Counted from the whole stretch's first letter, positions 1-62,563 are shown. The stretch: DNA of 63,511 bases, filler included, from Klebsormidium nitens (GCA_000708835.1; 5 parts of 5 records of this genome joined end to end with filler, not necessarily neighbours in it); one strand, 5' to 3'. Notes: generated by a model not told the origin, from the letters alone. Program-made: numbers and translations.

Positions 1-570
1 CTCATTGGCTGCGTCAAAGGACATTGAATTGCAAATTGCTAGTAGCGATAGATGCAATGAAATGAAACGGATGGACTTTCACTATGCATGAAATCCCGTC
101 CATACGAAATCCGTGATGTGAATACTAGTGCTGGCTAGAATCCGAGATCTGGAGCTGTGTGCCCCATTTTGAATTTTGACTGTGCCGCCCGTTTCCGAGA
201 GGAAATGCCACGTCAGTACTTCAAATTGCCCCAAAATATAGTCCCGGCATTAGATCGAGTTCCGTTGGCCTAGATGTCCGTTCGAATTTCATGTGAATCA
301 AATGTAGGCAGCCGTTGCATTGACCATCGATGGGGTAGAGAAATTGGTATTAAATTGGTTTGTATCGGAGTGGAATTTTTGGGAGAACAGTGGATCAGAA
401 CAGAACCCAAACAAATATAGGCCGTGGATTAGATGGTAGGGTCGGAATCCGTTATAGGCTGGCCGATGCTAAGAAGTAGCTATGACCTTGAACAATATCA
501 CGTTATGTGCACTCATTCCTAGTGGTTGTGCTTACTTGAAAAGCGCTTGCTTTCAATAGAAGGAAGTCGC

Positions 571-706
571 TTGTGAGGCGCTTTGCGTGTTCCTTGGATG
601 CATGGCTGCCGTCAATGAGCGACGAAAATGGGTCCCGTGCAACACAAAAAGACTCAATGACGAGTAAGCAACTACGTTATGAGACCCTCACCGAAAACTC
701 CAGCAC
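571..706 (+). repeat. Short (~135 bp) LTR-like repeat, family A, copy 1
   Basis: TGTGAGGCGC...GATGCATGGCTGCCGTCAATGAGCGACG...ATGACGAGTA...CCAGCA aligns by eye with 2076-2188 and 2709-2845; it begins with TG and ends with CA. The right boundary is approximate. Confidence 0.55.
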
Positions 707-1376
707 AGCCGGGGCACATCTACTTTCAATGCATGGCCAGATGTGGAGGGATGACACTTATGCAAGTGACAAAGAGCAGCGTGACTAGCCGGCTTCGAGC
801 TCGGAATTCGTCAACTTTGGCCGGACCCGTTGAACACCGGCAACAAATGAGTAGCGCACAGCATCTATATCATGGTCGTAACGTTATTTTGGATTAACGG
901 TTCATAAATTCCCCATAAGCGCATTTCTGATTTTGAAGAAATGAGAACAAAAATGAAGCGCGATAGGAATAATTTTAGTCTCAAATCTGCTTGCTGAAGT
1001 CAAGAACCAATACTCGATGCATGCCAGATTTCCGTCTTCTTTGAATGCAGTGCAGGTTGAAACGTGCTATTCGGAGGAAGCAACGGGTGTTCCTTGCTGT
1101 CTTCAAACCGCTTGATGTCGCCAACAAGGACTTTCTTTCTACCTCGTCACTGGCTGCATCTGCAACAACGAAACCGTTGTACTCGACTCTAAATCTCGGT
1201 GACGCTGCTTCAAGGGAGATGTGGAAGTCCTATTTCAAACATACATCTTCTGCTATGTTTACAAATCCTTTGCTTGTTGATCTTCGTCCAGAGCGAGAAC
1301 AAGATAATTCGGTCTCCGTTGACTCCATTCATCCACCTTTATATGGGCCAATGTACCGTTTAACTCCTATGAAATA

Positions 1377-1500
1377 TGTTGAAATTTGGTGATATGGTCA
1401 GCCGATTACTATGTGATTAGCGTTCGACCCGAGTGAGCCTAGAAGGCTAGTGAGCCCAGTGGAACGTGAGACAATAGTGGAGAGAAACACTATTGACATA
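1377..1500 (+). repeat. LTR-like repeat, family B, copy 1 (runs toward gap)
   Basis: TGTTGAAATTTGGTGATATGGTCAGCCGATTACTATGTGATTAGCGTTCGACCCGA matches 4761-4815 and 2336-2400. Confidence 0.5.
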
Positions 1501-2075
1501 CATCATTCTAAGAGAANNNNNNNNNNNNNNNNNNNNNNNNNNNNNNNNNNNNNNNNNNNNNNNNNNNNNNNNNNNNNNNNNNNNNNNNNNNNNNNNNNNN
1601 NNNNNNNNNNNNNNNNNNNNNNNNNNNNNNNNNNNNNNNNNNNNNNNNNNNNNNNNNNNNNNNNNNNNNNNNNNNNNNNNNNNNNNNNNNNNNNNNNNNN
1701 NNNNNNNNNNNNNNNNNNNNNNNNNNNNNNNNNNNNNNNNNNNNNNNNNNNNNNNNNNNNNNNNNNNNNNNNNNNNNNNNNNNNNNNNNNNNNNNNNNNN
1801 NNNNNNNNNNNNNNNNNNNNNNNNNNNNNNNNNNNNNNNNNNNNNNNNNNNNNNNNNNNNNNNNNNNNNNNNNNNNNNNNNNNNNNNNNNNNNNNNNNNN
1901 NNNNNNNNNNNNNNNNNNNNNNNNNNNNNNNNNNNNNNNNNNNNNNNNNNNNNNNNNNNNNNNNNNNNNNNNNNNNNNNNNNNNNNNNNNNNNNNNNNNN
2001 NNNNNNNNNNNNNNNNNNNNNNNNNNNNNNNNNNNNNNNNNNNNNNNNNNNNNNNNNNNNNNNNNNNNNNNNNNN

Positions 2076-2188
2076 CGTGTGCATGGCTGCCATCAATGAG
2101 TGATTCGAGCATGGGTGCCAAGCAACATGATAAAACCCGATGACGAGTACCTCGACTACACTATGACTCTCTACCATGGGTTTCTATA
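2076..2188 (+). repeat. LTR-like repeat, family A, copy 2 (5' part in gap)
   Basis: GCATGGCTGCCATCAATGAGTGA...GCATGGGTGCC...GATGACGAGTA is shared with the other two copies and is immediately followed by a PBS-like motif. Confidence 0.6.
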
Positions 2189-2200
2189 GATTATGGGCCC
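2189..2200 (+). promoter_or_regulatory. Putative primer-binding site complementary to the anticodon arm of initiator tRNA-Met (half-tRNA priming type)
   Basis: GATTATGGGCCC is 11/12 identical to GGTTATGGGCCC, the internal tRNAi-Met PBS used by Drosophila copia. It lies directly after an LTR-like repeat and before a gag-start-like GPLEGQNLNT segment. Confidence 0.55.
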
Positions 2201-2335
2201 ATAACGCTTGGTTGTGAAGAGGGCGCACAGATTCAAATTTGGTCCTTTAGAAGGTCAGAATTTGAATACTCTCGCCAATAGCCTGTGACGAAAAGGAGCG
2301 GAGAGTTTAGTTCAAATGGCGGGAGACAAAGGTGT

Positions 2336-2595
2336 TGTTAGAATTCGGCAAATATAGTCAGCCGAATTACTTTTTGTTAGGGTTCGGCCCGAGTTAGGGT
2401 TTGAACTAGTGAGCGCTGGCGTGCGTATATTCGACGGTTGAACGGTCAAATCGTCCACCACCATAAGTCTTACGGGTCTCTCTTGTTCCACTAGGCTCGC
2501 TAGCCTACTAAGGTTACTAGCCCAAGTCACACACTACTAGGCTCACTAGCCTAGCTCACAGTCACACTCAAATCAAGCTCTTGATATCCTCATCA
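2336..2595 (+). repeat. LTR-like repeat, family B, copy 2 (possible solo LTR)
   Basis: Starts TGTTAGAATTCGG, is homologous to the 1377 and 4761 copies, and ends near ...CCTCATCA. No target-site duplication seen. Confidence 0.45.
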
Positions 2596-2708
2596 CGGCT
2601 TACACTGCAGTACGGCCGCTCTCAACCGCCTAACCTCCAAACCGCCCGTGGAAACAACTAACGTGAAACATCATTGTATGGGACGTTTGGGGAGAGAAAG
2701 AAGCCGCT

Positions 2709-2845
2709 TGTAAGGCGCTTCGTGTGCTCCTCTTAGGATGCATGGTTGCCATCAATGAGTGACGAGCATGGGTGCCGGGCAACACGATAAGATCCGGTGA
2801 CGAGTAAATCAACCACACTACGACTGTCTACTATGATTTTCAACA
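2709..2845 (+). repeat. LTR-like repeat, family A, copy 3
   Basis: TGTAAGGCGC...TTTTCAACA (TG...CA), preceded by purine-rich GGGGAGAGAAAG (PPT-like) and followed directly by gag sequence. Confidence 0.6.
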
Positions 2846-2849
2846 GGCG

Positions 2850-4700
2850 TCGGATCCCGCAGCTTTGTGGTGAAAACTGGTCAACGTGGAATTTAAGGCC
2901 AAGTTCCGTAAGTTTCTTGCATACAATGGATGCCTGTGTGCATTGGAGGAGCCGGAGTCCGTGGAAGGGAGGAAAGTGTCAACAAAGCAAGGGGGCTAAT
3001 GCTGATCCACACGGAAGATGCATATGAGAAATTGATTGAGGGTCAACCCACTATAGCAAAAGCGTGGAAGAAGTCGGAAGACAACTTTGAAAAGAAGAGC
3101 AATGCGCGCATGATTCTGCTTAGGAGGGAGTTGATCGGTCTAAGGTTGATCAAGGAGAAAGCCATTGCAAAGTATCTAGGGGAATTCCGGGAGCTCAAGC
3201 CAGATGTGCAGGCGGCGGGACAAACCGTCTCAGAGGGTGAGCTGGCCGTGCACGTCTTGGAAGAACCATTGTGAAGTTCTCGGAGCTCGGCGAGGAAGAG
3301 CTGACCCTAGTCGAGATTGAGCCAAAGCTAATGCAGAATGAGCAGACGCTAAAGTTGGGGGCTGAAGCGAGGTCCTTGGAGGGGATTTCAGGTGGAGATG
3401 GAGGATTGGCGTATGCCGCCAAACATAGGGGCTACTCGAGCCCAGAGAAGGGCCGGGGAAGCTTAAACGAGCTAGAAAGAAGCTGGGAGGTGAGAGGCGG
3501 GAGCTCAAACCTGCCAACGTGCTATTGTTTGGGCAATGTGGGCCACATGAAGGCAAGATGCAGGTTTGCAAAACGCGGAGTGCCCCAAGTGCAGCGACAG
3601 GGGCCACACAAACGTGGTGTGTAGGCATCTACAGCGCGGCGCAAGTGGCCGCGCAAAGGATAGAGGGTTTGTGGAGGATGTAAACGGAGCAGCCTTTGTG
3701 GTGTGGGGCGACGACGTGGATGTGCGCAAAGGGGTGTGGATTGTTGACTCGGGCAGCACCCAGCATGTCACGGACAATCCGAGCCAATTCACGAGCTCTA
3801 ATCAGCTCGTGCGTGATGAGAAGATCGTGGGGATTTGTGGCAAGTCTTCGGTTGCAATAGGAATCGGAGATTGGAGTTGAAGTGTAAATCTGGAGCGGTG
3901 CGAGTGCGGTAACCTTGAGGAACTTGCGGCACACTCCGAGGGCACATGCGACTCATTTTGTTCGCTCTGACAAGGGCGATCGACATGGGAGCACGAGTGG
4001 TGCTCGAAGAAAGAACTGCGAAGATCGAAGCAGACGGTGTGGTCCATATGGAGGCATTCAAATGTGGGGGACTGTGGGAGATGGGGAAGCAGAAGGCATT
4101 CCTTGCAAGGGGTTCGGTAAAGGGGTACCGGGTGTGCTCCAGGGTGTGCTCCATTGCAAAGAGGCCAGTAAGAGCGGAAAGCGTGGTGAAAAAGACGGCG
4201 AAGGTCGTGGAGATCGATCTAGACGAGTCGGACGACGAGAATGAGGGCGTCGAACGAGAGAGGGGGACTTTTGTGGGGGCGGAAACTAAAATGAAGCGCG
4301 AGGGAGACGCGCCTGCGCTTAGACAAACGACGGCCGCGCCGCGGGCGTAGATTCAATAAGGGCCAATATGGGCCGATTGTGGACGGATGATACGCAAAGT
4401 CGTGGAGGTGTTGCAGGAGATGGAAAGGGCAAGGAGGCCCCGAAAACGGCGGTAGAAGCAAGCCCGCCGATGTGGAAAAGGCAATGAACAGGCCTGTGGT
4501 GCACTATCCGGACTTTGGAGATATCTCGAGAGTGCGACGGCAGCCCGTCGAGTGGTATCGGCCAAATGTGGAAGCAGCAACGGAAGCCGTGGGAACACAA
4601 GAGCCGGAGCACGGAGTGGAGAAGACGTCGCCAGAGGAGTGCTCAACGATGGCGACAGTGAAGGCTTTTGGGTGACGCCAAAGGAAAGACAACAGCCCAG
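2850..4700 (+). mobile_element. Degenerate Ty1/copia gag-protease region (frameshifted; integrase and RT absent)
   Basis: IPQLCGENWSTWNLR (gag N-terminus); AKAWKKSEDNFEKKSNARMILLRRELIGLRL (Retrotran_gag_2/UBN2-like); zinc-knuckle remnant TCYCLGNVGHMKARC; copia protease WIVDSGSTQHVTDN; post-integrase-like RVRRQPVEWY. The motifs lie in several different frames. Confidence 0.85.
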
Positions 4701-58892: not shown

Positions 58893-61229
58893 GCTGCCAC
58901 GTGGCTTGCTGCTGGCGCGCGCAGGCAACTCCGCTGGGGGGTCGGGTGGGCAGCCCAGGCTGCCTGGCGGCACGCTTTCTGCTTGCGGGGGCAAGACGGC
59001 TGGGGCGTCGGGGGGGTAGCCTGGGCTGCCACGTGGCGTTTCGCTCGCGCGTGCAGGCGACTCCGGTGTGGCACCAGGGGTGCAGCCCGGGCTGGCAAGT
59101 GGCACGCTCGTCGTGCGCCGGAGGCTGGTGGGCGTTGGGGCAGGAGAAGCTTGATCCCGTACCGCCTCCATCGGGTCAAACTTGTGCGCGCGGCAAACAA
59201 CTGTACCCTTGGCACAGCAGGGCTTGCAGAGCTGGGACACGCACGCCTTTGAACGGAAGTTCTTGTCACACTCGGCGCATTTGACCATAGCCTGCCGCGG
59301 TGCAGGTCCGTTTCCCCGCTCCTTTGCCGCGCAGTACTTCAAAACGGCAGTGTTGCATCTTTTCCGGGTTACTTCTACCTTCTTCCGCTCGCGCCGCCGG
59401 ATTTCCACCGCCGCTTCTTGAAACAACTTCAACATCAGCTTCTTCCGAGCAGCCCTCTCTTTCGCCTCATTCCTTTCTCGTTCGCGATCAACTTCGGGCA
59501 CCATCTCCGGTGCCAACTTTTCTTTCTCCGCCTTCAGGTTTACACCTCTTTCCGCTGCAGGCCGAAGCTCCGGCCTATTGGGAACCGTCGACTTTCCTGC
59601 TGCCTTGTCAAGCGCCGCGAGGAGGGCCACCAGCTTGCCTTTCATTATCTCCAACCCGAGCTCCTTTCCCGCAGCGGTGAAGTTGATGTCCTCACCCGTG
59701 TACGTTTCGCTCAGCACATGCTTCCGAAAACGCAGCTGATCTTTGACGGCTTCAAGCCGTGCGGCCTCCAATCGTTTCGCAATCCGGTCGGAGCTCCCCC
59801 CCAACTCCCCTGCCGGCAGCTCCACATGCTCCAGGCCACTCTCAACTTCTTCTTCCGACTTCCAAAGACCTCCCAAAGCCGTCACTTTCACTACAAGCTC
59901 CGCTTTTACCTCCGCCTCCTTCCGCCTCTTCACTGCCTCTCTTTCCCGCGCCTCCCTCAGTTTCGTCTCCGCTTGCTCCCGGTTTGTCGCCTGCCGCTGT
60001 CGGTGGAGCGCATCCAGCTCCGGCTTCAGTTTCATTGCTGCATGCACTAGCGCCGCCCTTCGCTCCGATCCCATTGCCCCCAGCCAGCCGGCCGACCCAT
60101 TGTTCTTGAAGAGCAGCACCCCTTCGAGCGCAATCGTCAGGAAGTTCGGCTTCTCCCGCATGACACGGTCGAGGGTCGCAAAGTCCCTCTCCGACACGTC
60201 GTTCTCCTTCTTTACACTTGCCAAATCCGCCCGCTTCCCTTCGTTCACCCCGTCAAACTTCCCTTCCGGAAGCTGATCTTTTGCCATCCTCTCTAGCACA
60301 ACCAACCAGACGCAGAAGTTGAGCTCCAGCATCTCCTTCACCACCGTGTCCTGCTCCACATACCGCTTGAGCGCATCCAGCACTTCGTCCTCCTCCCGCT
60401 CCCCCAAGTCCGGAAACAGCAACTCCCCTTCCAGGAACGCGGTCGCATCCTTTGACCATCGCGTGAACTTCTTCCGCATCTCGAGGTAACGAGTGTTGGC
60501 ATCCAGAATGTGCCCACTTCGCTTGAACGCCATCATAATGCGCCCTGCCGCCTGCTTCTCCAAAAGACCAAGAGTTTTCAGCCCCGCCAGCATGAGCGGG
60601 TACCGGAACCCATCTCGGACGGCAAGAAGGAGCTTGTTAAGAGGCCCGCCGTGGATCAACTCCCAGACAGACTTGCCCCGATCCTCCCTGCCGTCGAGGA
60701 AATCGAGGATGGCGCCTTGCAGCCTTAGGAGCTCCCCCGAGTTCCGGTACAGCGCTAAGTACCGATGCCCTTTGAAGGCAACGAGGTTTGGCTTAAGCTC
60801 GAGGCGAGCGCAGTGTTCTTTGAAGCGCTCCGGCACACCAGCCTGCTCGGACCCCCGTTTCTGCAGAGCTTTGCATCCAGCCCGCACAAGCCCGCACACC
60901 CTTGCCTCCCCCCTCTTATCCTTGTGTTTCCGCTCCGCCTCCGTTTCGCCCCCCTCTCCTACAAGGCCATCCAGACCCCCCTGCGGCTCGTTGAAGCAGC
61001 ACGCCTCGTACACCTTCATGGTTTTGGCTGAACCTTCCATAAACCCGATTCCCATATGCATGGCGCAGTACAGGGTTGACCGGTGCTAAAGCCTTTTTGG
61101 CGTCAAGCCCGAGCTGCTCCCACTCCTCCGGCGAGATGCCAAACTGTTCAAACCGGTACTGCGCCAGCTGCTCCGCTCGGTACTCCAGCAGAAAGTGCTC
61201 ATTGAAGAGCTTCTGGGAGGCTGCCCTGC
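58893..61229 (-). CDS. DDE cut-and-paste transposase (CxxH-motif group related to hAT/P/MuDR/Kolobok; superfamily not assigned) with a C-terminal Cys/His finger
   Basis: More than 720 uninterrupted codons from 61061 into the gap. The upstream segment AASQKLFNEH...WEQL...PVN joins LYCAMH (CxxH) through a 1-nt frameshift; FKGHRYLALY; KKENDVSERDFATLDR (ERxF-type catalytic Glu context); coiled, charged C-terminal half. The 5' exon(s) were not seen. Confidence 0.75.
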
Positions 61230-62563
61230 AGATTCGAGAGTTGCAAAATTGTTTGCTACCATTTTATCCGTGTATGTTTCTTGAGCTCAATGATGGTTGA
61301 CATGCAGAATCTGCTCAAACGACAAAGTAGCTGGTCGAGGATGCTCAAAGTCTTGGAAAGGTAATCTATTCCGGAAAGCAATCATCAGCATGTTGGAGTG
61401 CCACCCAAGATACAATTACTAGAAGGCAACCTGGATATTCACAAACACGCAGTCAGAATCGCAAGTGTAACATGATTGCACAAGTCCATCAGAGGCCTTT
61501 GTGTCTCTTGGAAGTGGCCCCCACAAGAATTGATAATACTCTCTGGCGTCAACCTGTTGCCTTGGCCTCATATAGTGAATCAGGTCGATGCTAACTGAAT
61601 GAATCTGACAATTGGGACGCAAGAAAGTCTTCCTAAGCAGGGATTCTCACCCGAGACTCTTGTCTAATGTAACGGCGCTAGCTTTCCGAGCCCCTCGTGG
61701 GGATCCCCCGGTAGCTATACGNNNNNNNNNNNNNNNNNNNNNNNNNNNNNNNNNNNNNNNNNNNNTTAATTAATTAANNNNNNNNNNNNNNNNNNNNNNN
61801 NNNNNNNNNNNNNNNNNNNNNGGTCACCATGTTCAGAAATTCAGGGTTCAGAAGGAACCCGAATGTATAATAAATGAAGCCCGGTTCACGGACGAAGGTA
61901 ACGCACCCGGTCGCCAATCCCGGTCTTGTTCGGAGATTCAGAGTTCATGCAGAAGGAACCCGAATGAGTTGGAATTGAAGCCCGGTTCATTTCTAGGATA
62001 CCCGGCGCCCGGGCCGCGCCGGTGCGCCGGTCCCCTTGTTCAAATACCTATTCAGGGTTCAGAGGGAACCCGAATGGACCTGAACTGATTCCGGCACATG
62101 TAAGTTCACCCTACATTGCTAGTCGGTTTTAACGTTTAGCATGGTCCCGAGCTGCCGTGATTTTGCATTTTGCCATCCATTTTAAAAATAGAATATTCAA
62201 TCTAGCCCTCATTGCTACTCGGTTTTAACTTTTGACGTTTAGCATGGTTCCGGCTGTTGTGATTTGCTTTTCGCAATGCCATTTGATTTGATCTTATATA
62301 CGGATAATGGAAGACTTATATACGTACAGCTGGTAGCCGACCTTCGTACCAGTGGCTAAGCGATTCTACCAGTAGACGGTGCCCGGTGCAACACGTCAAA
62401 ATCCAACCTGCCGTAAGTACCGGAAATTTCCCGAAAATATCGCGATTCTGCATGATGCAGTCTGTACAAGTGCGCAAACTCACAAATTACATGATAAATG
62501 TAGACCCGCGGCGGCAAACGAAATTGAAGGACGGTCCGAGCCCCGGGGGCTCGGTTCAGACGT

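Follow-up and report, generated by a model that had tools for sequence, protein, structure and literature searches.

A Cys7His finger at the C-terminal end of a Hermes-like transposase in Klebsormidium nitens has a ligand spacing that resembles that of SRS transcription factors

In this work, a finger of seven cysteines and one histidine was located near the end of a long open reading frame (ORF) in the window, the whole stretch of 63,511 nt of Klebsormidium nitens DNA, filler included, that was analysed. We consider it fairly likely that this finger is the end module of a Hermes/hAT-like transposase family for which Pfam has no model, that its likeness to the SHI/STY/SRS/LRP1 (SRS) finger is one of spacing, and that the copy in K. 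nitens represents a relic, or a decaying or domesticating gene. What is new here is a Cys7His finger, specific to one lineage, on a transposase family of Hermes fold that Pfam does not model, and beside it a gene model that is probably mis-annotated.

Positions 58893-61721 of the window are the end of K. nitens scaffold DF237343.1 (GCA_000708835.1), which confirms the streptophyte-alga host proposed in an earlier note on this DNA. The locus (L001) was taken as the reverse complement of that scaffold end, starting at window position 61721, and all features given below in window positions lie on the minus strand. The long ORF (58893-61061) comprises 723 codons from MHMGIGF to the edge of the piece, beyond which the assembly carries it on into a gap of N. 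Over 77% of its length, the ORF is 100% identical to the deposited K. nitens protein KFL_003940140. Residues 1-345 (60027-61061) were assigned by model and by alignment with P0003 (a distant relative introduced below) and 60 relatives to the C-terminal two thirds of a hAT-like catalytic domain, and they hold the last catalytic helix and an insertion domain composed entirely of helices. The candidate catalytic glutamate is E291 (60189-60191) in the context NDVSERDF, which corresponds to the invariant Glu of the relatives' alignment (E476 in the numbering of P0003:190-720). A helical, coiled-coil-like linker with the family motifs GLW and QLRFR (alignments A1 and A2) follows as residues 346-585 (59307-60026), and the Cys7His finger occupies residues 595-626 (59184-59279). 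The last ~70 codons of the ORF (58893-59108) are Pro-rich, have no aligned counterpart in the close relative P0002 described below, and are encoded by a degenerate, G+C-rich 66-nt tandem repeat that runs into the assembly gap. This repeat contains CCACGTGGCAGC; its direct repeats span L001 2614-2832, and a further copy stands beside another gap (L001 6511-6597). The Pro-rich repeat tail is probably not the native C-terminus of the protein.

Upstream of the long ORF, three-frame translation revealed an exon in another frame (61075-61225, AASQKLFNEH...KKALAPVN), which is collinear with residues 44-102 of P0002 and is preceded by an AG acceptor at 61226-61227. The AT-richer stretch from 61226 to 61721 is read as an intron from this acceptor, from the exon match to P0002 and from its G+C content of 44-48%, compared with 56-64% in the ORF. 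Of the conserved catalytic motifs, the window itself holds only CxxH (LYCAMH, in the shifted frame) and E291; the two catalytic Asp lie in exons past the contig end. The surroundings of the locus are repeat-rich. Just past the gap, L001 4558-5799 (minus strand of L001) encodes a 413-aa retrotransposon Gag-like ORF with two CCHC zinc knuckles, CYRCG..H...C and C..C...GH....C.

A regular expression run on the translation of window:58893-61061 recovered the finger peptide CAECDKNF...VVCRAH, CAECDKNFRSKACVSQLCKPCCAKGTVVCRAH, with the spacing C-X2-C-X8-C-X4-C-X2-CC-X6-C-X2-H and eight ligands. The peptide, its frame and its Cys/His spacing at 59184-59279 match the earlier description exactly. Seven of the 17 Cys of the ORF and one His are concentrated in these 32 residues. 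A word search returned two close proteins, namely P0001, which is the deposited KFL_003940140 (568 aa), and P0002, a protein of 780 aa encoded on a JGI metagenome contig (L002) and 52-54% identical to the window ORF. The finger of P0002, CPKCKKSVRSKACVSKLCKACCAKGLLQCKAH, has the same spacing and keeps eight of eight ligands. P0002 is the sole close relative found besides P0001, and this conservation indicates that the motif is not a chance feature. Moreover, the two proteins are identical at 21 of 32 finger positions (66%) but at only 32 of 106 positions (30%) of the preceding linker and 10 of 54 after the finger, so the finger forms an island of conservation and can be regarded as a constrained domain. 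The finger-bearing members found are two, both algal; metagenome scans with the whole protein and with the finger alignment gave no match after tblastn confirmation. The Cys7His finger probably binds two zinc ions; its ligand pairing and binding partner are putative. A PDB sequence search with the finger returned C2H2, LIM or RING rows, none of them significant (E >= 0.77). The structural model of the finger, built from two sequences, reached a pLDDT of 63.7, and fold searches with it (Atlas, PDB by Foldseek, VIA-wide) gave at best Z 2.4 or E 0.29 to generic C2H2-like rows. As this model is weak, the blanks of the fold searches are uninformative and were not counted as evidence.

The deposited gene model of KFL_003940140 lacks most of this finger. 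By reconstructing its junction, a 137-nt intron was placed at 59201-59337, which deletes residues 575-620; because its length is no multiple of three, the frame shifts and a stop follows eight codons later, so that P0001 ends ...TAVLNCLPRAQV. If the deposited model were correct, the intron would be spliced and the finger never made. The end of P0001 and the GT...AG ends of the junction agree with this reading, but we regard it as very improbable. The intron leads straight into a stop, and none of the words of the stretch is present in the RNA-like runs of K. nitens, which thus gave evidence neither for the deposited model nor against it. Furthermore, conservation within the C-terminal third is highest in the finger region, and the ORF runs through it uninterrupted in P0002. 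In view of this in-frame conservation, the deposited 137-nt intron is probably a prediction artefact.

The protein that carries the finger was called a transposase in the earlier note, and its fold bears this out. When the finger, both halves of the ORF, P0002 and the upstream ORFs of L002 were scanned against Pfam and NCBIfam, nothing but weak coiled-coil noise was returned. A more distant relative, P0003 (27% identity over full coverage), opens a family of at least 246 proteins named for bivalves and a sponge, all of them labelled 'uncharacterized' and many in multi-member clusters. Among 65 sequences, D83, D156, C202xxH205 and E476 (P0003:190-720 numbering) are conserved in at least 90%, the H and the E being invariant; the two Asp stand in DETSKF and MSDRAAT, followed by C-x-x-H and by a Glu in SE..F..LD. 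An AlphaFold model of the core (P0003:190-720), built on alignment A4, which includes the window ORF, reached a pLDDT of 94.5. The twelve best matches of this model in a Foldseek search of the PDB were all the Hermes hAT transposase (E 5e-7, probability 1.0). By VIA-align, it was superposed on Hermes with Z 19.4 and an rmsd of 3.4 over 340 residues, and the next families were ISCth4 (Z 11.2), the P element (9.7) and retroviral integrases (~9). The match to Hermes thus supports the label 'transposase' and points to a hAT-like DDE lineage without Pfam coverage.

The family resembles Hermes (PDB 4D1Q/6DWZ/2BW3) in its RNase-H-like DDE core, in a CxxH that follows the second Asp, in a large insertion, helical throughout, that precedes the catalytic Glu and in a helical C-terminal region, and the structural alignment reaches residue 609, where Hermes ends. 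Neither the hAT dimerisation domain (PF05699, Dimer_Tnp_hAT) nor BED nor any other hAT domain of Pfam was matched by the window ORF, by P0002, by the upstream ORFs of L002 or by nine animal relatives. Unlike Hermes, the family has long coiled-coil segments on either side of the core and an extra C-terminal module, which is either the finger or a Spin/Ssty unit. The missing N-terminal half of the algal protein is carried by L002 as collinear upstream ORFs (E 1e-6 and 0.005 vs P0003), where the exons of the window and of L002 were compared separately. No convincing terminal inverted repeats were found in L002, which has only 437 nt after the stop; the search gave short chance-like inverted-repeat pairs, and no 8-bp target-site duplications were seen. 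The K. nitens contig stops within the gene and meets a gap. Directly upstream of the algal transposase gene, L002 contains a Ty3-type retroelement (223-4272) with capsid, RT, RNase H and integrase.

The C-terminal end of the family differs between animals and algae. The finger was absent from all of about 120 animal relatives listed, of 246 matches, and many of these animal proteins end instead in a Spin/Ssty (PF02513) unit at the extreme C-terminus, which is the position of the finger in the algal proteins. Like the finger, the Spin/Ssty unit stands after a coiled-coil linker; unlike it, the unit has a Tudor-like fold without cysteines. The proteins P0003-P0122 were seen to be a multi-copy bivalve and sponge family with a Hermes-like core lacking a Pfam model and with long coiled coils, and some animal members have been named 'SPIN3-like' by NCBI on the Spin/Ssty unit alone. 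In Pfam scans, no BED, THAP or other recognised DNA-binding domain was detected in the family. The common position of finger and Spin/Ssty, taken together with this result, leads us to infer that the end module may be an exchangeable tether. In the proposed layout, a coiled-coil N-terminus would be followed by the RNase-H-like DDE core with CxxH and helical insertion, by a linker of ~240-250 residues and by the end module. This module would bring the transposase to DNA or chromatin, at its own ends or at target sites. In animals it would be a unit of the methyl-lysine-reader type, and in algae the two-zinc finger may act on DNA or chromatin and thereby guide the recognition of ends or the choice of targets. 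In piggyBac and PiggyMac, the C-terminal cysteine-rich domain is a small two-zinc cross-brace module that binds DNA at transposon ends. As the terminal module of another DDE transposase, it offers a functional analogy for the algal finger, but it belongs to another transposase superfamily and has another ligand pattern. The PiggyMac domain (6ZOP) matched the finger model only in an insignificant Foldseek row (E 1.9, TM 0.25).

The main alternative concerns the origin of the finger. It could be a genuine, though strongly diverged, homologue of the SRS/DUF702 finger: a transposase in streptophyte algae would have captured an SRS-type finger of its host, or SRS would have descended from such a transposon module. 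We judge either course unlikely. The spacing speaks for such a kinship. The SRS finger has been described by the formula CX2CX7CX4CX2C2X6C (PMC9846857), with which the spacing given for SRS in the earlier note agrees. The algal finger shares with this RING-like finger (PF05142, DUF702) the arrangement CX2C-X7/8-C-X4-C-X2-CC-X6-C(-X2-H). In both algal proteins, six of the seven spacers are identical and the seventh is longer by one residue (X8 for X7), just as had been claimed; that so many spacers should match is improbable, which lends a distant SRS relation some weight. The two fingers have the streptophyte lineage in common, and the reported origin of SRS in the streptophyte ancestor (PMC7027972) fits this lineage. 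SRS proteins are transcription factors of 200-370 residues, whereas the algal finger stands at the end of a transposase. In SRS, a His lies inside the X4 spacer (C-x-H-x2-C), as in its C3HC3H description. This His is missing in the algal finger, as the earlier note had recognised, since the spacer reads VSQL in the window and VSKL in P0002. Likewise, no IXGH motif (I.GH or [ILV]GGH) is present in the window ORF or in P0002.

Beyond the ligands, the kinship found no support in profile searches. The comparison with Pfam DUF702 suggested in the earlier note was carried out by hmmscan against Pfam-A, and PF05142 was not matched at E up to 10 by the finger (77 aa), the C-terminal 212 aa, the whole ORF or P0002, with the limit that HMMER filters may hide matches with E above ~0.1. 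NCBIfam gave no match for either algal finger at E up to 10. A finger profile of two sequences (A3), run by hmmsearch with an E limit of 0.001 against 1.84 billion representative proteins, returned only P0002 and two unrelated repeat proteins, with no SRS protein among the matches. These two repeat proteins, one with a C2H2-like and one with an MBD-like repeat, were rejected as spurious. The 21 non-ligand positions, scored against the SRS consensus given in the earlier note, gave BLOSUM62 sums of -6 and -8, which is the level of shuffled sequences (p 0.42 and 0.60). DUF702 was also absent from the Atlas, PDB and VIA-wide fold searches with the weak finger model. One search pointed the other way: by language-model features over the 7.7 million clusters of the Atlas, both fingers were nearest to the same arthropod cluster of 150-aa proteins, 19% of whose members carry PF05142, at a score of 0.83. 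This is under the reliability line of 0.9, and in one case out of three a shuffled protein also reaches 0.8. The cluster is arthropod and not plant, and the window and P0002 queries are close relatives, so this neighbour counts as one weak lead. Taken over the Pfam, NCBIfam, profile, non-ligand and fold tests, no profile or structural match beyond the Cys spacing was obtained, and the relation to SHI/STY/SRS proposed in the earlier note found no support. The fusion of an SRS finger with a transposase is not established, and an exchange of SRS with transposons, or its domestication from them, remains speculation. A broader form of this alternative, in which the finger and SRS/DUF702 would make up one ancient finger class of shared origin by capture or domestication, with a C-terminal 'reader' swapped between kingdoms (Spin/Ssty in animals, the finger in algae), appears a little more doubtful still. 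The reading of the finger as the end module of a Hermes-like family, with spacing as its likeness to SRS, is retained as the favoured one.

A different question is whether the K. nitens copy still functions. By comparison with P0002, a frameshift of +1 base or -2 was located at 61074-61077, where APVN is followed by (T)LYCAMH in the window and by S-LYCAMH in P0002. It splits the upstream exon (...KKALAPVN) from the CxxH motif and the long ORF, and the copy as assembled cannot supply the whole catalytic domain from a single reading frame. A 2714-nt contig in a K. nitens DNA run matches 58982-61695 exactly at a depth of 10.7, and no other contig at least 80% identical was found in that run to cover the ORF. 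Because this run may be the assembly's own source, it gives the frameshift no independent support. The ~54 nt at the contig end (61668-61721) are a repeat with a summed contig depth of ~900-1700, compared with 10.7 elsewhere, and it continues into many different flanks in the same run; it is probably a high-copy element that broke the assembly. In the run of another organism, four short contigs are 90-95% identical to 59597-60932, none of them reaching the finger. The codon differences listed from that homologue are 30 synonymous and 9 non-synonymous, which indicates purifying selection on the protein. That organism thus has a conserved orthologue or sister copy of the gene, and since its run may be RNA, the gene may be expressed there. 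The K. nitens locus itself reads as a single damaged copy of a gene that appears to have been constrained until recently. The transposase had been described in the earlier note as mobile; with a copy that has single-copy depth, is frameshifted and is cut by the contig end, its mobility is unproven.

It could also be supposed that the locus is a domesticated host gene derived from a transposase, in which the finger would have a putative cellular DNA- or chromatin-binding role. The single-copy-like depth of the one exact contig, with no second contig over the ORF, and the purifying selection seen against the other organism's homologue fit a host gene, as does an intron position common to the window and L002. 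We consider domestication unlikely nevertheless, about as much so as homology of the finger with SRS. The frameshift puts the CxxH motif out of frame with the upstream exon, and the RNA-like runs from K. nitens are blank for the stretch. Moreover, the copy stands between a high-copy repeat and a gap and adjoins the Gag-like ORF, the animal relatives are multi-copy and transposon-like, and the catalytic residues are kept in L002. A relic, or a gene that is decaying or on the way to domestication, remains the favoured description of the K. nitens copy.

In literature searches, no paper linking DUF702 with transposases and nothing relevant joining Ssty with hAT transposases was found. If the finger were related to SRS after all, it would provide a concrete and testable origin, at the root of the streptophytes, for a family of transcription factors specific to plants, but the present evidence does not support this. 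The deposited K. nitens gene model has overlooked a conserved finger of the two-zinc type. More generally, a widespread transposase family with the Hermes fold exists without a Pfam model, and its C-terminal modules differ between animals and algae. This swap of modules suggests a tethering function for the C-terminal end of these transposases.
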